Below, piece by piece: positions 2,601-64,000 of a stretch of DNA of 64,000 nucleotides. The notes beneath the pieces were generated by a model, which had not been told where the DNA came from, ran no database searches, and saw only the letters and a list, made by a program, of their open reading frames with translations. Position numbers and translations under genes: made by a program. The DNA lies in IMG/VR virus record IMGVR_UViG_3300028558_000016, positions 62,001 to 126,000 of that record, one strand, 5' to 3'. Each line of letters opens with the position of its first letter. Position 1 is the first letter of the stretch.

Positions 2601-3148
2601 ACATAATACTATTTGGCCCTCCTGGGTCTGGAAAAGGAACTCAAGCGGAAAAACTTGCAAAGAAACATAATCTCGTTCACATGTCTACCGGAGACATAAT
2701 GAGAGAAGAAAAAGAAAAAGGAACTGAACTTGGAAAAAAGTTGGACCTTGGTTCTGGCAAGCTCGTTGATGACGAGACTGTTCTCGCGTTAGTAGAAAAT
2801 AAAATAAAAGAAGTCTATAGAACACATCCAAAGGATGTTGGATTCGTATTTGATGGATTTCCAAGAACAATAGAACAAGCAATATCGCTAAACCAAATGA
2901 TCGACATTGACAAAGTAATTCTACTAATGGTCAAAGACGACGAGGTGACAAGGAGAATTATAGAACGTGGAAAGAAATCTGGACGGCCAGATGACAATCC
3001 TGAAGCCATCAAAAAGAGACTTATTGAATACACTGAGAAGACTTATCCAATGAAACAGATGTATAGTCTTGAAGGAAAACTCTCAGTCATTAATGGTGCA
3101 ATGGATGTTGATGGAGTTTTTGATGCAATATGTAAAGCAATATCATGA
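2597..3148 (+). CDS. adk: adenylate kinase (short LID)
   Basis: GPPGSGKGTQA, STGDIMR, FDGFPRT, RPDD. Confidence 0.95.
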   Translation: MNIILFGPPGSGKGTQAEKLAKKHNLVHMSTGDIMREEKEKGTELGKKLDLGSGKLVDDETVLALVENKIKEVYRTHPKDVGFVFDGFPRTIEQAISLNQMIDIDKVILLMVKDDEVTRRIIERGKKSGRPDDNPEAIKKRLIEYTEKTYPMKQMYSLEGKLSVINGAMDVDGVFDAICKAIS

Positions 3149-3627
3149 TAACAAAAATTATATCAGGCGGTCAAACCGGTGCGGATCAAGGTGGATTGAA
3201 AGCTGCCAAGAGATATGGAATTGAAACTGGAGGACATTGCCCAAAGGGAGGTCTTACAGAAGATGGCAACAATCCAAACTTGATGAAGGTGTTCGGGCTC
3301 ATTGAAACCACCTCAGACAAATATCCTGCAAGGACATTTGAGAATGCTAAAAACAGCGATGGGACAATAAGATTTGCACACGATTTTAATTCAAGAGGAG
3401 AACTATTGACGCTTAAAGCAATCAACCAATATAACAAACCTCACATTGATGTGAATGTTTCTGCCAATCACCAAACAACACCTAAGATGGTTGCTGACTG
3501 GATAATCAATAACAAAATAAGCGTATTGAATGTTGCAGGAAACAGAGAGTCAACATGCGAAGGATTAGAACAATTCGTTATTGAATTTTTAAGAGAAGTC
3601 ATTAGCCTAACTAATTATGGAAACTAA
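3145..3627 (+). CDS. SLOG-family 'putative molybdenum carrier' protein
   Basis: IISGGQTGAD, RT..N...SDGT, LNVAGNRES. Confidence 0.85.
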   Translation: MITKIISGGQTGADQGGLKAAKRYGIETGGHCPKGGLTEDGNNPNLMKVFGLIETTSDKYPARTFENAKNSDGTIRFAHDFNSRGELLTLKAINQYNKPHIDVNVSANHQTTPKMVADWIINNKISVLNVAGNRESTCEGLEQFVIEFLREVISLTNYGN

Positions 3628-9229: not shown

Positions 9230-9453
9230 TGGAATGCAGGATTTATTTCAAATTTATTTTCTTTTATTGCAGAAATAATCTTGGTCTGTTTTTCTTTTTC
9301 AAGATCTTCAAATGGAAAATCCATTCCTTCATTGATACAAAACACTTCTCCTTTAAATGTATAAATGCCATAAGCATCTACATACTTATCGCCAAAAATA
9401 ACTACAGCTGGATCAGTATGGTTCTTACCAAATTTTTCGATTAATTCTTTCAT
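9226..9453 (-). CDS. hypothetical protein
   Basis: ORF coupled to the downstream gene. Confidence 0.55.
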   Translation of the reverse strand: MKELIEKFGKNHTDPAVVIFGDKYVDAYGIYTFKGEVFCINEGMDFPFEDLEKEKQTKIISAIKENKFEINPAFQ

Positions 9454-9481
9454 ATCGTAAATATACCAATAATTTTTGAAT

Positions 9482-9513
9482 AAAAAAAGGCCTGAATTTC
9501 TTCAGGCCTTTTT
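9482..9513. terminator. intrinsic terminator (symmetric)
   Basis: AAAAAGGCCTGAA-tttc-TTCAGGCCTTTTT. Confidence 0.85.
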
Positions 9514-9531
9514 ATAGAGATTGAGTTTTGG

Positions 9532-57700: not shown

Positions 57701-58870
57701 ATGAAAGAGGATACTAAGAAAAGAGCAGTTACCATATTGCTTCATAACGATGATGGAGACATCCTCGCAGTGTCTCGTAAGAATGACATCAATGATTTCG
57801 GATTGCCTGGTGGAAAAATCGATGAAGGTGAAACAGAAGAGCAAGCAATCATAAGAGAAACTAAAGAAGAAACAGGCCTTGACGTTTCAAACCTGCGTCC
57901 ATTCTTTGTAAGAGAAGACGGCGAATATATCAGCACAACTTTTATAGGAAATTATTCAGGTGAAATTTCAACCTCGGAAAAAGGTAAAGTTATTTGGACA
58001 AATTTCGATAAAATCAAAAAAGGTTCATTTGGAAAATACAATGAACAATTAGAAACTTATTTAAAACAGCAACACAAATTCCAGGAACGTGACCTGATAT
58101 TAAATCCTGCAACAGGCGAGGCATTCTTAATATTGCATAAGACAGAAGAAAGTCCGTTAGCAGCTGGAGGATATTTCGTGAAAGCATTTTGTTCAACCAT
58201 TGGATTTGGCTTTATTAAAAAGACGGCATTCGATAATATTAGAATGTATTTGGTTGCTTCGGCTTCGATGATTGGTCCAAATGGTCAAATGATCGAAGGG
58301 TTTGAATCAAAAGATTTTCCACTTAACAAGCTGTTGGAATCTCATTTCACGACTGCTGTTAAAGCTCGCCAGTTTGCGTGTCAATCACATTTTGATGCAA
58401 ATCAATACTACAAGCTTAATAATGAAGTTGATGTTTTATATTCATATCATTTAAGAAAGGTCGTAGATGTTGGAAGAAGATTTCAACACTTGATTCCAGC
58501 AATAGATTGGCCCTATGTTGAAGGAGGTCTTTGGAACCACGATTGTGTTGAAGATGCAAGACAAACCTTCAATGACCTGAAATCTGCAGTAGGAGAAAGA
58601 TCCGCTGTAATAGCATTTGCATTAACCAATTCAACCGGAACAATCAGAAGCGAAAGAGCTGACGATAAGTATTACTTGAAAATAAGAACTACTGAATATG
58701 GAACTTTTGCAAAACTGTGCGACAGGATTGCTAATATCGAACATGGATTAAAACATGGAAGCTCAATGACCAAAAAATACAAGAAAGAACATGAGCATTT
58801 CAAAAAGGAATTATATGTGGCTGGAGAACTCGAGCCAATGTGGGAGTATCTGGAAAACTTGATAGCGTAG
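57701..58870 (+). CDS. Nudix + HD (SpoT/Mesh1-like hydrolase) fusion
   Basis: PGGKID.GE....IRETKEETG; Y..HL..V, HDCVED, KLCDRIAN. Confidence 0.85.
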   Translation: MKEDTKKRAVTILLHNDDGDILAVSRKNDINDFGLPGGKIDEGETEEQAIIRETKEETGLDVSNLRPFFVREDGEYISTTFIGNYSGEISTSEKGKVIWTNFDKIKKGSFGKYNEQLETYLKQQHKFQERDLILNPATGEAFLILHKTEESPLAAGGYFVKAFCSTIGFGFIKKTAFDNIRMYLVASASMIGPNGQMIEGFESKDFPLNKLLESHFTTAVKARQFACQSHFDANQYYKLNNEVDVLYSYHLRKVVDVGRRFQHLIPAIDWPYVEGGLWNHDCVEDARQTFNDLKSAVGERSAVIAFALTNSTGTIRSERADDKYYLKIRTTEYGTFAKLCDRIANIEHGLKHGSSMTKKYKKEHEHFKKELYVAGELEPMWEYLENLIA

Positions 58871-58897
58871 TTGTAGTATAACTTTAAACTTATTGGA

Positions 58898-59332
58898 ATG
58901 GGAGCACATGCAAGCGCATATTTATATTGGGGCATCGACTTCAATGATGTGTATGTAGAAAAGATCGAGAAAGAAGAATATGACATTCATGATCAAAAGA
59001 CTGGAAAGAAGACAGGTAAAAAAGGAACAGAGTCAAAGACCTATTATGTGAATAAACATAATGGAAAAAAATATGACCACGATGATTATTCTCTTGGCAT
59101 AAAAGAAAAATACATCCATAAAATGGAACAGGAGTCTGATTCAAAAATTATCGGAGTATTGGTTGGAGAAGTATCTGAACAGAATGGAGGATCTCACGAC
59201 ATCGATGACTCAATGTTGCAAAAAGCAAAAGATGAGCTTGATAAAGTTTTGTTGACACATCTTCTTACTGGAACTGGATTGATTGCAAAAGTTAAGCCGA
59301 GATTAATTTTAAACCTTTATTGGAGCTATTAA
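58898..59332 (+). CDS. hypothetical protein
   Basis: ORF in operon. Confidence 0.55.
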   Translation: MGAHASAYLYWGIDFNDVYVEKIEKEEYDIHDQKTGKKTGKKGTESKTYYVNKHNGKKYDHDDYSLGIKEKYIHKMEQESDSKIIGVLVGEVSEQNGGSHDIDDSMLQKAKDELDKVLLTHLLTGTGLIAKVKPRLILNLYWSY

Positions 59333-59577
59333 TGAAAACAACAATAAAAATAGAAAAAGAAGACATCGTCACATCCAGATTTGGAATGAATGTCGAAGTG
59401 CAGTTGAACGAGAACACAAGCCTTGTTTTTACTCCAGAAGCTCTTGATGAACTTGTTAAGGATTATGAAGTCATCAAAGAAGAGATCGAAAGAACAAACA
59501 GCCAAATAGTGGAAAGTCTTAGGACTGCCCATGATATTAGTCAATTAGAATTTCCATTCGATGAAGTTAGGATTTGA
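59332..59577 (+). CDS. hypothetical protein
   Basis: TAATG-coupled ORF. Confidence 0.55.
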   Translation: MKTTIKIEKEDIVTSRFGMNVEVQLNENTSLVFTPEALDELVKDYEVIKEEIERTNSQIVESLRTAHDISQLEFPFDEVRI

Positions 59578-60217
59578 TTATTATATTGAAAACGGATATA
59601 AAGTATTTACAAAGGAGCATCACCTCAAACGAGGAACATGTTGCCAAAACGGTTGCAGACATTGCCCGTGGAATTTTAAACTTAAGAAAATGAACAAAGA
59701 CGATTTATTTTTTGACATGGATGGCGTAATGGCAGATTTTCATGGAAAAATTGACAAGCTCATCAAAGAGCATTATGCAGATGAAACGATCACTGAGAAA
59801 ATAGTTCCAGTAGAAGAACTAACGGAAAATATTTATGTTGAAGGACATCCAGAAAGAGAACCATTCACTGAAGCGTTTGAAAGTCTTCCTGGATTTTACA
59901 GAGATCTTGTTCCAATAGAAGGAGCAATAGAAGCGTACAAAGAACTGTACAAACACTATAATGTGTTTATTTTGTCGACTGCAAGCTGGGGAAATCCATC
60001 TTGTTTCACGGATAAACGTTTATGGGTAGAAGAACACCTTGGAGAATTTGCACACAAGCGTTTAATATTAACACACCACAAAGAACATTTTACTGGAAGA
60101 GCACTTATAGATGACAGAACAAAGAATGGAGCCATCGATTTCAAAGGAGAGCACATTCATTTCAGAACGGATAAATTTAAAGATTGGAACACAGTTTTAA
60201 AATATTTATTACCATGA
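59561..60217 (+). CDS. 5'(3')-deoxyribonucleotidase (NT5C, HAD) with N-terminal Cys-rich DUF5522-like peptide
   Basis: HLKRGTCCQNGCRHCPW; DMDGVMADF, K..WV, LIDDR. Confidence 0.85.
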   Translation: MKLGFDYYIENGYKVFTKEHHLKRGTCCQNGCRHCPWNFKLKKMNKDDLFFDMDGVMADFHGKIDKLIKEHYADETITEKIVPVEELTENIYVEGHPEREPFTEAFESLPGFYRDLVPIEGAIEAYKELYKHYNVFILSTASWGNPSCFTDKRLWVEEHLGEFAHKRLILTHHKEHFTGRALIDDRTKNGAIDFKGEHIHFRTDKFKDWNTVLKYLLP

Positions 60218-60642
60218 TAAAAGAAGATGTTAAAGACACACCAGAATGTAGAAAAACAATGATTTCCTACATTGAATATCTCGAGAAGGATGGAGAATTT
60301 CTCGATAACGGTTTTCTTATTTATGTTTCAGAGAAAATTTTAAGCAAGTCTTCTTTGATAGCATTAAAGGAAGTTCTCGAAAAAGTAACTGCAAAACTCA
60401 GCATTGACGTAGACAATAAATTTAAAACAAAAGAGCAAGCTGAAGTTGCATTCAATCAAGCGAGAGATAAAGCATTTAAGCATTGCTTGATCCTTGAATT
60501 GAAACACAATGTTTCAAAAACAATTGATCTTGAAAAAATTGAAAAGAAATCTAAGGCCATGGATAAAACTGCAGGTGATGCTTTATTCGACGGTTTAGGA
60601 TCAACTATTTCGATGTTGCTTAAAAAACATATCAAAAAATAA
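60214..60642 (+). CDS. hypothetical protein
   Basis: ATGA-coupled ORF. Confidence 0.55.
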   Translation: MIKEDVKDTPECRKTMISYIEYLEKDGEFLDNGFLIYVSEKILSKSSLIALKEVLEKVTAKLSIDVDNKFKTKEQAEVAFNQARDKAFKHCLILELKHNVSKTIDLEKIEKKSKAMDKTAGDALFDGLGSTISMLLKKHIKK

Positions 60643-60655
60643 AGTACATTAGCTT

Positions 60656-61024
60656 ATGAGAAGCAGCTTCATAGATTGGCTGATAGAACAACAGGAAGCA
60701 GATGGTAAAGCTGGAATACTTTCTCGTTGGGTTCTCTCTGAAATCGAATTCGAGCCTCTTGAATTCCATGACATTTTAGAGAGAATAATAAATGATCCAC
60801 ATGGAACCGTGGATGATAAAGCTGAGATGAAAGCCATCGCAGTTTATTGCTTGGTGGATTATGCTTCATTTCTTGCTGAAGAAGGAATAGGAATAAAAAT
60901 AATTGAAGATGCAGAGATCGATAAAGAAAGACTCAACATTGCTTTGAAAAATGAAAATTACGAAGAGGCCGCAAAATTAAGAGACAGATTAAATAAATTA
61001 AAAGATGGAAATAAAGAGGAGTAA
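60656..61024 (+). CDS. protein with C-terminal UVR (UvrB/C) motif
   Basis: ALKNENYEEAAKLRDRL. Confidence 0.7.
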   Translation: MRSSFIDWLIEQQEADGKAGILSRWVLSEIEFEPLEFHDILERIINDPHGTVDDKAEMKAIAVYCLVDYASFLAEEGIGIKIIEDAEIDKERLNIALKNENYEEAAKLRDRLNKLKDGNKEE

Positions 61025-61445
61025 ACACAGTCGCAGAAGAAGAAAGAAATTACACGTTGGTGAATACCAATTGTTTGGTTTTACGATTCTTATTAAAACA
61101 AAAGAAGCTGATTACAATAATCCAGATGATATTGAATTCATTCATGCGCTTGACGATGCCGTGATCGACATAATAGAGTCAGAAGGTTTATGTTGTGCAG
61201 GCGGTGGAGGAAAAGATTATACCATGTTTGCTATGTCACCAATCGGCAAGAAAAACAATGTAACAGAGGATAAAATTTCCAATGTCTTAAAAAGAGTCAA
61301 AGCTATTGACTCTGTTATAGATGCAGTCACTTTTCCCATGATAGATGCATGGCATTTTTCGGATGCAGATGATAAGAAAGAAGAGGCTCTTATATTAGAA
61401 GCGGTTAATCGTCTCGGAATAAAAGATTACAAAATAATAAAATAA
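61005..61445 (+). CDS. yggL: YggL/DUF469 family 50S-binding protein
   Basis: SRRRRKKLHVGEYQLFGF, GGGG, DAW. Confidence 0.8.
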   Translation: MEIKRSKHSRRRRKKLHVGEYQLFGFTILIKTKEADYNNPDDIEFIHALDDAVIDIIESEGLCCAGGGGKDYTMFAMSPIGKKNNVTEDKISNVLKRVKAIDSVIDAVTFPMIDAWHFSDADDKKEEALILEAVNRLGIKDYKIIK

Positions 61446-61525
61446 ATTTTTTCGTTTCAAATATTGTTCCTATATTTGTAAAAGAAATTAGAAACAAAAA
61501 GATATATAGTTAATAGAATAAGCAA

Positions 61526-61615
61526 ATGACAACTACTTTAACATACACGAACAGGTTTACTGCGGATTGCGCGGATGAACAATTGTTGGGTTTGTTAAAC
61601 AGTCCGATGCGATAA
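61526..61615 (+). CDS. putative 29-aa Thr-rich leader peptide
   Basis: MTTTLTYTNRFTADCADEQLLGLLNSPMR; overlaps the antiterminator strand. Confidence 0.45.
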   Translation: MTTTLTYTNRFTADCADEQLLGLLNSPMR

Positions 61616-61664
61616 AATATTTCATCAACTTTAACAAACCCGAGCTAACCACTCGGGTTTTTTT
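61586..61664 (+). promoter_or_regulatory. attenuator: antiterminator (61586-99/61630-43) overlapping terminator (61636-61664)
   Basis: TTGGGTTTGTTAAA pairs with TTTAACAAACCCGA; terminator AAACCCGAG-ctaacca-CTCGGGTTT-TTTT. Confidence 0.7.
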
Positions 61665-61688
61665 GTCTTGTATCGAAGGTAATTATAC

Positions 61689-61760
61689 GGTTCTGTAGTC
61701 AAAGGGTTACGATTTTTGGTTGTCAACCAAGAGGTGCGGGTTCGAGTCCCGTCAGAATCG
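61689..61760 (+). tRNA. tRNA-Asp(GTC), weak D-arm
   Basis: GGTTCTG/CAGAATC acceptor, loop TTGTCAA, T-arm GCGGG-TTCGAGT-CCCGT. Confidence 0.75.
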
Positions 61761-61762
61761 CT

Positions 61763-61842
61763 GGAGGAAACATGGGTTCGAATCCCATACGAAATGGAAA
61801 CACATTTCGTTCGTTTAGTGGCAGGACGTCTCCCCGAATTGG
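61763..61842 (+). ncRNA. circularly permuted tRNA-like element (YrlA-like Y RNA or permuted tRNA)
   Basis: Order is T-arm, closed acceptor stem, D-arm; the ends form the anticodon-stem equivalent GGAGG/TCTCC. Confidence 0.75.
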
Positions 61843-61848
61843 AAGTTT

Positions 61849-61919
61849 GGTCCGGTGGCCGAGTGGTTAGGCGGAGCTCTGCAAAAGCTCATACGGCGGT
61901 TCGAATCCGTCCCGGACCT
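61849..61919 (+). tRNA. tRNA-Cys(GCA)
   Basis: Canonical cloverleaf, loop CTGCAAA, U73. Confidence 0.95.
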
Positions 61920-62038
61920 CGTGGTGTAGAAGAGTATTGTGAAAATGGAAACCGTGCAAGGTGTAACAGTAAACAAAATGCTTCGTTCGTAAATGATTGG
62001 TCACATGAATTAATTCACTTGGCCATAACTGTAAAATT

Positions 62039-62112
62039 GGTGGCGTAGTTCAGCTGGTTAGAATGCCTGCCTGTCACGCAGGAGGTCACGGGTTCGAGTC
62101 CCGTCGTCACCG
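62039..62112 (+). tRNA. tRNA-Asp(GTC)
   Basis: Canonical cloverleaf, loop CTGTCAC, G73. Confidence 0.95.
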
Positions 62113-62129
62113 CAAATGTTCTTTGAAAT

Positions 62130-62203
62130 GGTCCTATGGTGGAATTGGTTAACACGTCAGTTTCTCAAACTGAAGATTACGGGTTCGATCCCCGTTGGGA
62201 CTA
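62130..62203 (+). tRNA. tRNA-Glu(CTC)
   Basis: Stem TCAGT/ACTGA, loop TTCTCAA. Confidence 0.9.
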
Positions 62204-62207
62204 CGAA

Positions 62208-62301
62208 TGAATTAAGCCGATAGACTGGTTAATGGCGCGTCGACAACGTCCGTGATAAGGTTTCCATGATGAAACTCATGCTGATCACGTAGGCTAATTC
62301 A
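62208..62301 (+). ncRNA. candidate structured RNA between tRNAs
   Basis: Terminal stem TGAATTA(A)GCC/GGCTAATTCA; inner CGTGAT/ATCACG and CATGA/TCATG. Confidence 0.45.
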
Positions 62302-62308
62302 CTTATTT

Positions 62309-62385
62309 GGGGCCTTAGCTCAGTTGGCCAGAGCACCTGCCTTGCACGCAGGGGGTCATCGGTTCGAATCCGATAGGCTCCACCA
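62309..62385 (+). tRNA. tRNA-Ala(TGC), CCA encoded
   Basis: G3:U70, loop CTTGCAC. Confidence 0.95.
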
Positions 62386-62677
62386 AATGATTAGTTGAAG
62401 TAGATGGAAAATCGTTCTGTTGGTAACCATTTTCCAAATTAATGTGATGATGTCTCAGACTTATATCACGAACCAACAAAGAGTGGTGAACTTAAAAATC
62501 ACCGTGAGTAAAAAAGAAGATAACGTTCTTTTGATATTTAAAAACAAGAAGTCGATGATCTACCTTGAAAAAGGTGAATCAACGAAAGTTCCGATCCCAA
62601 TGATCACAACGTGTTTTACGTTGAAGAAGTTTAGATTGAAATTATCGTTCGACTTAATGTGTGAAAAATAATTTCAC

Positions 62678-62751
62678 GCTCCTGTAGTGGAACTGGTTAA
62701 CACGTCCGCCTTTCACGCGGAAGATCGCGGGTTCGAACCCCGTCGGGAGTA
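62678..62751 (+). tRNA. tRNA-Glu(TTC)
   Basis: Stem TCCGC/GCGGA, loop CTTTCAC. Confidence 0.95.
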
Positions 62752-62756
62752 CAAAT

Positions 62757-62842
62757 GTTGCCGTATGCAAATTGGTTTAAGCGAACAGACTTTCAATCTG
62801 TGTTCCGTATGGAACGTGCGGGTTCGAACCCCGTCGGCAATA
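62757..62842 (+). tRNA. atypical class II tRNA: TTC (Glu) anticodon with long variable arm and A73
   Basis: ACAGA-CTTTCAA-TCTGT, then GTTCC-GTAT-GGAAC variable arm. Confidence 0.8.
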
Positions 62843-62928
62843 CAAAAATAAAATAATAGGAGGACCCAGGCTGTGGACGCAACAAAAATGTAATTTCTCT
62901 TTACGAACAGTTTTGCAAAGAGAACGGA

Positions 62929-63720
62929 GTGGAATTTGAAATAGTAAAATCCGTAATTCCACATGATGACACAACTCTTTTCTGCTGTTCAGGAATGCAA
63001 CAGTATAAAAGCAAGTTTAAAGATCAAAATTATAAATGCACGATTTCAAACATCCAACCGTGCATCAGATTAAATGATCTTGAAGAAATAGGAGACAGCA
63101 CTCATTTCCTATACTTCAACATGATGGGATTCTTTTCTTTCAGAGAATGGACTGTGAAAAGAACAATTGATTTTTGGATGTCGTTCATTAATAAGATTGG
63201 TCTTAAAGTGGATTATGTTACAATCCATCCAGACAAAAAAGAATGGAAAGACTTTTATATTGAATACAATGTTGAAGTAAAAGAAGATCTCGAATGCACT
63301 TGGACTGATGGAGACCTTGGAGGATACTGCACAGAATTTTATGTGAACGGTATTGAGATAGGAAACATAGTCAATTGCAATGGTGATTGCATAGATGTTG
63401 GATTTGGTTTAGAAAGACTTGACATGCTTGTCAACAATAAAACAAAAGATGAGATAAGCGTGTTGAAGGAAACCATTGAAAAGATAATTGAAAGCGGTTA
63501 TGTCCCTGGACCTAAACAGCAGGGATACATCTTGAGAAAGCTTTTGAGATTGTTATATGTGAAAGGTGGAAGTATCGATCATGAATTCTTTGTCAAGGAA
63601 AAAGAAAGACAGGAACGATTGGTAAGAAAATATTCTTTGCTAAAACAAAAGCACAAAGACAAAAGCAAAGAATGGTGGTATGGAACACATGGAATTGATT
63701 TGAATGAAATGGGGCCTTAG
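62929..63720 (+). CDS. miniature alanyl-tRNA synthetase (catalytic domain and compressed helical domain; no editing or C-Ala domain)
   Basis: TLF..SGMQQYK, QPCIR.ND...GD..H...F.M.G.FSF, IEIGNIV, IDVGFGLERL, GYILRKLLR, Y.THG. Confidence 0.85.
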   Translation: MEFEIVKSVIPHDDTTLFCCSGMQQYKSKFKDQNYKCTISNIQPCIRLNDLEEIGDSTHFLYFNMMGFFSFREWTVKRTIDFWMSFINKIGLKVDYVTIHPDKKEWKDFYIEYNVEVKEDLECTWTDGDLGGYCTEFYVNGIEIGNIVNCNGDCIDVGFGLERLDMLVNNKTKDEISVLKETIEKIIESGYVPGPKQQGYILRKLLRLLYVKGGSIDHEFFVKEKERQERLVRKYSLLKQKHKDKSKEWWYGTHGIDLNEMGP

Positions 63721-63785
63721 CTCATTTGGCTTAGAGCGCTTGCCTGGCAGGCAAGAGGTGACGGGTTCGAAACCCGTAGGCTCCA
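63711..63785 (+). tRNA. tRNA-Ala(GGC)
   Basis: G3:U70, loop CTGGCAG; overlaps the AlaRS stop codon. Confidence 0.9.
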
Positions 63786-63789
63786 CTAT

Positions 63790-63854
63790 CGGAAAGGATC
63801 ACAACATCCCGTACGAGAAAGAACGACACAACTGTTGTGAGTTGGAAAGTTCTT
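63790..63854 (+). ncRNA. candidate kissing-loop RNA
   Basis: Hairpin loops CACAAC and GTTGTG are exact complements. Confidence 0.5.
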
Positions 63855-63855
63855 C

Positions 63856-63927
63856 GGGATCATAGTATAAGGGCAAGTACGCATCCCGCTCAGGGATGAA
63901 ATGCAGGTTCGAATCCTGTTGGTTCTA
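63856..63927 (+). tRNA. atypical tRNA (nominal CTC anticodon, G33, G3:U70, A73)
   Basis: GGGATCA/TGGTTCT acceptor, CATCC-CGCTCAG-GGATG, canonical T-arm. Confidence 0.65.
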
Positions 63928-63932
63928 CAATT

Positions 63933-64000
63933 GGGGAATTGATTTGAAATTGGCTATCATGTTAGACTTGCAATCTTTCGTTACGGGTTCGAGCCCCGTA
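63933..64000 (+). tRNA. tRNA-Ala(TGC)-like, truncated by the window end, weak anticodon stem
   Basis: GGGGAAT start, loop CTTGCAA, T-arm ACGGG-TTCGAGC-CCCGT. Confidence 0.6.

Follow-up and report, generated by a model that had tools for sequence, protein, structure and literature searches.

How does a phage keep the tRNA genes that it carries under control, and can a short translated leader and a transcription stop signal placed directly in front of such genes decide when they are transcribed? This question is raised by a locus in a viral contig of 482,156 bp, IMGVR_UViG_3300028558_000016, of which we analysed bases 62001-126000, a stretch of 64,000 nucleotides that we refer to as the window and whose positions are used throughout. 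The same contig appears as Ga0265326_10000002, and the stretch is present in sixteen DNA metagenome runs, mostly from rhizosphere, with identical DNA in several of the rhizosphere runs, while no RNA run was listed among them. Mapping of four of these runs showed the leader at low depth without any variants. A preliminary description of the locus, made from sequence alone, had proposed a leader-peptide attenuator that gates the phage tRNA operon, based on a promoter at 61471, a 29-codon ORF with six Thr among its first 12 codons, an intrinsic terminator about 25 nt before the first tRNA, and a 14-nt segment within the ORF complementary to a region that includes the 5' arm of the terminator. Our analysis confirms that every one of these elements is present at its position. 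The features of the locus, including those identified in this study, are as follows.

61471-61478, + strand: Bacteroidota-type -7 promoter box TATATTTG, with a predicted transcription start at about 61483.
61483-61525, + strand: predicted A-rich 5' UTR without a Shine-Dalgarno sequence.
61526-61615, + strand: leader ORF of 29 codons, MTTTLTYTNRFTADCADEQLLGLLNSPMR.
61526-61537, + strand: A-rich N-terminal start (M-T-T-T) of a family-wide type, probably an initiation feature and not the sensor.
61537-61560, + strand: region 1, the 5' strand of the anti-antiterminator hairpin.
61562-61579, + strand: proposed sensor codons 13-18, GCG GAT TGC GCG GAT GAA (A-D-C-A-D-E), each of which can be read by a tRNA of the operon.
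61575-61600, + strand: region 2, which pairs either with region 1 (61575-99) or with region 3 (61585-61600).
61606-61626, + strand: small spacer hairpin that contains the stop codon (61613-15), a stretch that a ribosome waiting at the stop codon would occupy.
61630-61644, + strand: region 3, the terminator 5' arm plus 6 nt upstream, shared by the antiterminator and the terminator.
61636-61664, + strand: intrinsic terminator, with stem 61636-44 paired with 61652-60, loop 61645-51 and T-run 61658-64.
61689-61761, + strand: tRNA-Asp (GUC).
61849-61920, + strand: tRNA-Cys (GCA).
62039-62113, + strand: tRNA-Asp (GUC).
62130-62204, + strand: tRNA-Glu (CUC).
62309-62385, + strand: tRNA-Ala (UGC).
62678-62752, + strand: tRNA-Glu (UUC).
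62757-62843, + strand: 87-nt tRNA with a long variable arm and anticodon UUC, of uncertain identity.
62929-63720, + strand: alanine--tRNA ligase-related ORF (N-terminal catalytic part only), inside the array.
63711-63786, + strand: tRNA-Ala (GGC).
63856-63928, + strand: tRNA-Glu (CUC).
63933-64000, + strand: low-scoring tRNA-Ala(UGC)-like gene, cut by the end of the window.

The first step was to ask whether these elements exceed what is expected by chance. The leader ORF begins 48 nt after the -7 box and carries Thr at positions 2, 3, 4, 6, 8 and 12. The terminator has a 9-bp stem with 5 G-C pairs, a 7-nt loop and a run of seven T, and the stop codon of the leader lies 20 nt before its stem. 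The segment 61586-99 pairs with 61630-43 over 14 bp, one of them G-U, and this duplex has an energy of -17.8 kcal/mol against -12.4 for the terminator hairpin, with a z-score of -5.2 to -6.2, and none of 500 or 200 dinucleotide shuffles of the upstream part reaches it. A loose terminator scan of the surrounding 6 kb is as a whole not above chance (4 found, 3.7 expected), but this site is the strongest hit on its strand there, and it is the only terminator in the 64-kb window preceded by a leader-type ORF. A scan for sigma-70-type promoters was uninformative, giving fewer hits than in shuffles. In addition, two features had been overlooked in the preliminary description. One is a hairpin at 61537-61599 (-21.6 kcal/mol, z -5.07, reached by none of 1000 shuffles), in which region 1 pairs with region 2 and holds the antiterminator strand in the minimum-energy fold when no ribosome is present, so that the layout is the full four-region trp-type design with 1:2, 2:3 and 3:4 pairings. 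The other is the run A-D-C-A-D-E at leader residues 13-18. Six consecutive residues drawn from the four amino acids Ala, Asp, Cys and Glu have a P of about 1e-4 given the composition of the other leaders described below, and the array behind the terminator encodes tRNAs for these amino acids, whereas no tRNA-Thr was found in it. The leader also contains Thr, Leu, Asn and other codons without a matching tRNA in the array.

The promoter and the neighbouring genes were examined next. TAnnTTTG is the -7 consensus of the primary sigma factor of Bacteroidota, located at -12 to -5, and the mRNAs of these bacteria lack Shine-Dalgarno sequences and are A-rich before the start codon (PMC7366714, PMC9723704). 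A transcription start for the tRNAs downstream of 61664 had been named beforehand as an observation that would speak against attenuation. By motif alone, we find no support for such a start, since 61471 is the only TAnnTTTG on the + strand between 61000 and 64000, and the array within the window thus has no recognisable promoter of its own. The gene upstream of the leader, with its stop at 61445, encodes a YggL-like 50S-binding protein. The alanine--tRNA ligase-related ORF matches PF01411 (E 9e-20) but scores below the cut-off of TIGR00344, and it has 784 relatives. The tRNA-Ala-like gene at the window end scores 24 bits with Rfam and is called by ARAGORN at a relaxed threshold on a stretch that runs past the window (L002). 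Just past the window end, at L002 position 9011, another TAnnTTTG precedes two small ORFs and a non-discriminating AspRS (416 bits against a cut-off of 353), and the next + strand terminator follows that gene, after which come another promoter box and SmpB. Read-through from the array could therefore also reach the AspRS gene, but that gene has its own promoter-like box. Rfam models match only tRNAs in this region, apart from Leu_leader at 22 bits against a threshold of 50 (E 0.2) on 61610-61664, which is the terminator alone, and there is no T-box hit up to E=1 in 61000-64000.

If the design is functional, it should recur in front of other tRNA genes. The nearest record in the phage collection searched, LR745206.1, is an uncultured phage of 634,780 bp that matches only the tRNA-Ala and AlaRS-related stretch, at 69%. 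Al-Shayeb et al. describe a 634-kb genome in the Mahaphage clade and predict Bacteroidetes hosts for their largest genomes, and attenuation is never mentioned in that paper (PMC7162821). In LR745206.1, two units near the matching stretch have a near-identical promoter box (TATATTTGTAAAAGAA), an ORF of 27-28 codons, a strong terminator and then tRNAs. A leader containing YESYYEE stands before tRNAs for Glu, Glu, Glu, Tyr, Glu and Tyr, and a leader containing ISIAVIGNGAGAI stands before Ile, Gly, Met/Ile and Gly. In 148 kb of that genome, seven units stand before 50 of the 56 tRNAs, for example MTTTQQIQQQQINQTD before three tRNA-Gln and MKTINNTSKSSSRSSSMSEIRLYS before Arg and Ser. Scans of IMG/VR with the promoter motif were unspecific. 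A scan that ignores the leader and searches for a terminator of the AAACCC...GGGTTTTTT type followed by a tRNA T-arm worked better and returned at least 120 stretches, many of them on contigs of 100-600 kb, so that the resulting census is a sample. Searches with the YggL-like neighbour found only the source contig, both in IMG/VR and in JGI metagenomes, and contigs carrying relatives of the AlaRS-related protein (70-85% identity) have differently arranged arrays, which yielded one further unit (L484) but no homologue of the leader in the window.

To test whether leaders match their operons, we used ARAGORN for the tRNAs, required a hairpin-plus-T-run terminator within 60 nt of a tRNA, and took the longest ATG ORF of 10-50 codons ending within 60 nt of the terminator. 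This gave 147 units in LR745206.1 and the sampled IMG/VR contigs, 135 of them with an ORF and 101 with non-redundant leaders. The fraction of leader residues whose amino acid has a tRNA in the same operon is 0.307, against 0.176 (sd 0.0085, maximum 0.212) in 20,000 re-pairings of leaders and operons, giving a z of 15.4. Because units related by descent share both leader and tRNAs, this z-score counts sequences rather than independent events and overstates the latter, although many compositionally distinct families contribute. All 20 amino acids are more frequent in leaders whose operon has the matching tRNA, from 1.2-fold for Thr through 1.6- to 3.7-fold for the other 19, with Gln the highest. 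The signal is confined to the ORF frame, with 0.307 against 0.15-0.175 in the other five frames (Wilcoxon P about 1e-14). ORFs are present in 92% of units against 41% of shuffles, with a median length of 31 against 18 codons, and they begin M-[KRNT]-[TNKQ] in 66% against 8%. Cognate residues peak at positions 9-16 (0.45-0.52) and fall to about 0.15-0.2 at both ends, with only 0.13-0.21 at positions 1-4, and the A-D-C-A-D-E run of the window lies in the region of this peak. The match also reaches the codon box for Leu and Arg. Operons with only a CUN-reading tRNA-Leu have 21 CUN to 17 UUR leader codons while UUR-only operons have 2 to 12 (P 0.011), and AGR-only Arg operons have 18 AGR to 5 CGN while CGN-only operons have 8 to 12 (P 0.014). 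The TAnnTTTG motif lies within 120 nt upstream of 59 of 100 leaders, against 10 of 100 on the opposite strand, and the 20 nt before the ATG have a G fraction of about 0.1 and an A fraction of 0.4-0.65. In contrast, the same terminator-then-tRNA pattern in a sample of bacterial genomes gave 28 units, whose ORFs are mostly the ends of real genes followed by ordinary terminators, with no codon match (z 1.0), although rare bacterial cases are not excluded by a sample of this kind.

We then asked whether the position of a ribosome could decide between the alternative structures. In the window the predicted switch is thermodynamically clean. With no ribosome, the minimum-energy fold is the 1:2 hairpin plus the terminator; with the A site on codons 5-17, except codon 9, the 2:3 antiterminator is the minimum-energy fold even when the whole terminator has been transcribed; and with the A site on codons 18 to stop the terminator is intact. 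Across the class, the best pairing between the leader and the terminator 5' arm has a mean z of -2.42 against dinucleotide shuffles and reaches P<=0.05 in 62% of units (t-test P 1e-22). The pairing segment starts around codon 22 and ends a median 10 nt before the stop codon, which itself lies 20-34 nt before the terminator stem. Homologous leaders show compensatory changes between region 2 and the terminator arm, namely GTTCGG/CCGAAC against ACTTGG/CCAAGT in one family, and GATTCGA/TCGAATC, AATCCGA/TCGGATT and GTTCGA/TCGAAC in another, but as no close homologue of the window's leader was found, this covariation does not bear on the window's own helices. With no ribosome, the terminator is intact in the minimum-energy fold of 94% of units, but in only 31% does a stall flip this fold, because most terminators are stronger than their antiterminators, so that most units would have to work kinetically. 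When nascent transcripts were folded instead with a ribosome footprint masked, 0.6-0.7 of the terminator 5' arm is sequestered when the A site is 13 or more codons before the stop but only 0.09 at the stop codon, and cognate codons make up 0.409 of the stall-competent positions against 0.209 of the rest. A 1:2 hairpin, clear in the window, is only weakly above chance across the class (mean z -0.46).

Taken together, these results are best explained by a ribosome-mediated transcription attenuator that puts a phage tRNA operon under closed-loop control by decoding speed, a reading to which we assign a probability of roughly 0.78. In this view, transcription starts at the TATATTTG promoter and the leader is translated while RNA polymerase moves towards the terminator. 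A ribosome that runs through to the stop codon would sit on the spacer between regions 2 and 3, the 2:3 helix could not form, and transcription would stop 25 nt before the first tRNA. The result would be the same with no ribosome, because region 2 is then locked in the 1:2 hairpin. If the ribosome stalls in the middle of the leader, however, region 1 would be covered and region 2 free to pair with the terminator 5' arm, and polymerase would read on into tRNA-Asp, Cys, Asp, Glu, Ala, Glu and the rest, and into the AlaRS-related gene. The most telling stall sites are codons 13-17 (Ala, Asp, Cys, Ala, Asp), whose cognate aminoacyl-tRNAs would be scarce, and the new tRNAs would relieve the stall and shut the operon again. 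What our analysis demonstrates is the sequence elements, the alternative folds and the class-wide statistical link between leader codons and operon tRNAs. By contrast, we infer that the leader is translated, that termination and read-through occur in vivo and depend on leader translation and cognate aminoacyl-tRNA, and that tRNA supply is the physiological signal; a Bacteroidota host is likewise inferred from the promoter type and the lack of a Shine-Dalgarno sequence, and coupling of transcription and translation in that host is assumed. The interpretation given in the preliminary description, that a leader-peptide attenuator induces phage tRNAs on demand, is therefore partly supported. Its headline is supported by the comparative and folding evidence, but neither the implied role of the Thr codons as the signal nor the proposal that translation shut-off allows read-through is supported, the latter since untranslated leaders should terminate, as in superattenuation of the trp operon.

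Other explanations appear much less likely. One is that the Thr codons are nevertheless the regulatory codons, so that the operon responds to Thr-tRNA shortage or to a general collapse of translation. Half of the first 12 codons are Thr, and stalls at Thr6, Thr8 and Thr12 also give the antiterminator fold, so a response to Thr-tRNA shortage cannot be excluded. However, Thr is the amino acid least linked to operon content across the 101 leaders, stalls at Thr2-4 leave the terminator largely intact, and MTT and MKT starts also precede operons without tRNA-Thr, such as MTTTQQIQQQQ before three tRNA-Gln. An equally unlikely alternative is that the element senses amino-acid starvation, that is the charging level, rather than tRNA abundance, as classical biosynthetic attenuators do, with the tRNAs simply co-regulated with the synthetase genes. 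A ribosome reads only aminoacyl-tRNA availability, so the two signals cannot be told apart from sequence, and the operon does hold an AlaRS-related gene and is followed by the AspRS with no terminator in between. Against this, most units in the class contain only tRNAs, the agreement of Leu and Arg leader codons with the codon box of the operon's isoacceptor points to tRNA species rather than amino acids, and more tRNA does not cure amino-acid starvation. Less likely still, the leader may be translated and codon-matched while the hairpin acts mainly after transcription, either as a fixed partial terminator that releases a small leader RNA or as a processing or stability element for the tRNA precursor, without stall-dependent switching. 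In 69% of units the terminator stays the minimum-energy fold at every stall position, and released attenuator RNAs can act in trans in other bacteria (PMC6614838), but this does not explain why a segment inside the ORF mimics the terminator 3' arm and co-varies with the 5' arm, nor why cognate codons sit just upstream of that segment. The weakest alternative, an ordinary terminator ending upstream transcription with a chance ORF and tRNAs made by leaky read-through or from an unrecognised promoter, draws on the commonness of terminators just before tRNA genes in bacterial genomes and on the local terminator scan, but is opposed by the promoter box between the upstream gene's stop and the leader, by antiterminator and 1:2 pairings far beyond shuffles, and by the frame-specific leader-tRNA match that bacterial controls lack.

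The closest known systems are the leader-peptide attenuators of amino-acid biosynthesis operons in enterobacteria (trpL, hisL, thrL, leuL, pheL and ilvL), and similar elements were inferred upstream of amino-acid operons in Flavobacterium (PMC9723704). They share a short ORF near the promoter with a cluster of regulatory codons, an intrinsic terminator before the first structural gene, an antiterminator that shares the terminator 5' arm, the 1:2 hairpin present in the window, read-through after a stall and termination when a ribosome reaches the stop codon. In the locus described here, however, the targets are ten tRNA genes plus an AlaRS-related fragment rather than an amino-acid biosynthesis or aminoacyl-tRNA synthetase operon, so that the product would be the sensed molecule itself and act directly on the sensor, and the proposed sensor is a mixed set of codons that mirrors the tRNA mix of the operon, with four amino acids here and up to about nine elsewhere, instead of a run for one amino acid. 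The context also differs, being a phage with Bacteroidota-type promoters and no Shine-Dalgarno sequence. In the pheST attenuator of E. coli, the pheM leader peptide with cognate codons controls an aminoacyl-tRNA synthetase, a gene of the translation apparatus, which recalls the AlaRS-related gene and the AspRS that follows, but pheM has single-amino-acid specificity, belongs to the host chromosome and regulates no tRNA genes. T-box riboswitches also sense the state of a specific tRNA and choose between terminator and antiterminator upstream of translation-related genes, but they bind uncharged tRNA directly through a specifier codon and the T-box sequence and have no translated ORF, whereas the codon match found here is in-frame and spread over many codons. 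Cysteine-responsive polycysteine short ORFs in mycobacteria likewise appear to be short ORFs whose codon content reports the availability of one aminoacyl-tRNA and tunes downstream operon expression, but they differ in that they are reportedly leaderless, respond to one amino acid and attenuate operonic gene expression (bioRxiv 10.1101/834739). Full-text searches for leader peptides or attenuators in front of tRNA genes, in phages or in bacteria, found no description of such an element in a literature that lacked most subscription papers, so that, as far as we could find, this would be the first case of tRNA genes under leader-peptide attenuation.

Phage tRNA genes are usually treated as constitutively co-expressed cargo, and why phages carry them is still debated, with codon usage, host tRNA decay and defence by anticodon nucleases as the candidates. 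The recurrence of the same design in about a hundred other phage tRNA operons suggests that these phages make tRNAs only when decoding runs short. Going further, we consider it likely, though less firmly than the reading of the locus itself, that large phages using Bacteroidota-type promoters carry a widespread and so far undescribed family of 'mirror' leader peptides, in which each tRNA operon is preceded by a short ORF whose middle codons list the tRNAs encoded behind it. If so, the mechanism would extend classical attenuation to multi-input sensors and to Bacteroidota-type gene expression, the leader would give annotators a rule to predict the content and boundaries of an operon, and the units would be compact natural parts for codon-specific translation sensors. 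If each operon is gated by the decoding speed of its own codons, the phage measures tRNA shortage codon by codon and answers with the matching tRNAs, which makes the purpose of phage tRNAs directly testable. Each operon would then switch on only when ribosomes wait for exactly those tRNAs and be switched off by its own products, a modular feedback control of tRNA supply that, judging from general knowledge rather than from these data, could serve to bridge codon-usage gaps where the host decodes poorly, or to replace tRNAs lost to host shut-off or depleted or cleaved by host defences such as anticodon nucleases.

The tRNA array also contains an 87-nt tRNA at positions 62757-62843 of the window (also at 382-468 of stretch L119), which has a long variable arm of the type II shape but carries the anticodon UUC, so that ARAGORN calls it Glu. 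Long variable arms normally belong to Leu, Ser or Tyr tRNAs in bacteria, and the identity of this tRNA is therefore uncertain. We also found that spacers of 87-118 nt lie between tRNAs, at 61762-61848, 61921-62038 and 62205-62308 of the window. One of them contains a T-arm-like sequence, GGGTTCGAATCCC, which may be a decayed or non-canonical tRNA that the tRNA finders miss.

The array is surrounded by a translation-related island, which covers positions 57701-61445 of the window and positions 9067-11305 of L002, a stretch of the same contig that runs past the end of the window (window-equivalent about 64070-66310). This island holds NUDIX, NT5C/DUF5522, a YggL-like 50S-binding protein, an AlaRS-related fragment, a non-discriminating AspRS and SmpB, but no tmRNA gene was called in the window or in L002. 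The alanine--tRNA ligase-related protein, encoded at 62929-63720 of the window, has the N-terminal catalytic part only. It has 784 relatives at E<=1e-10, which are mostly unnamed metagenomic proteins, while a few are annotated in Rhizobia, and in several contigs it sits inside tRNA arrays. In a related phage contig, a resolvase and an IS605 OrfB/TnpB-like gene lie directly after the AlaRS-related gene (stretches L481, 7041-8803, and L482, 1500-3262).

In Planctomycetota genomes (stretches L362, L377, L388, L430 and L434) and in the IMG/VR stretch L268, a conserved 33-codon ORF (MTSFRSSIASEP...LPVHPLRL) plus a terminator-like hairpin precedes very long tRNA arrays. However, this ORF is not matched in composition to the tRNAs, so it represents a different element. 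In stretch L341 (13219-13245 and downstream), the leader MNSINNIKFYYFKKHSGSGC precedes a tRNA that ARAGORN labels 'Stop', that is, one with a suppressor-type anticodon, followed by tRNA-Tyr.

In L484 (4860-5026), a further unit from a contig carrying a relative of the AlaRS-related protein, the leader MKTNNTYKPVGQVAIAPYFYGTDKGFGLGVLCSF precedes Pro, Tyr, Asp, Phe, an AlaRS-related gene, and then Lys, Gly, Gly, Val and Ala. Nearly every tRNA of this operon has its residue in the leader, even though ORFs interrupt the array. We also compared two homologous 37-codon leaders, at 9401-9514 of stretch L071 and at 3051-3164 on the - strand of stretch L121, which differ at a few residues and whose operons differ in tRNA content. 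Although the correspondence between residues and tRNAs is not complete, L071 has Lys at residue 6 and also a tRNA-Lys, while L121 has neither, which hints that leader and operon content co-evolve.
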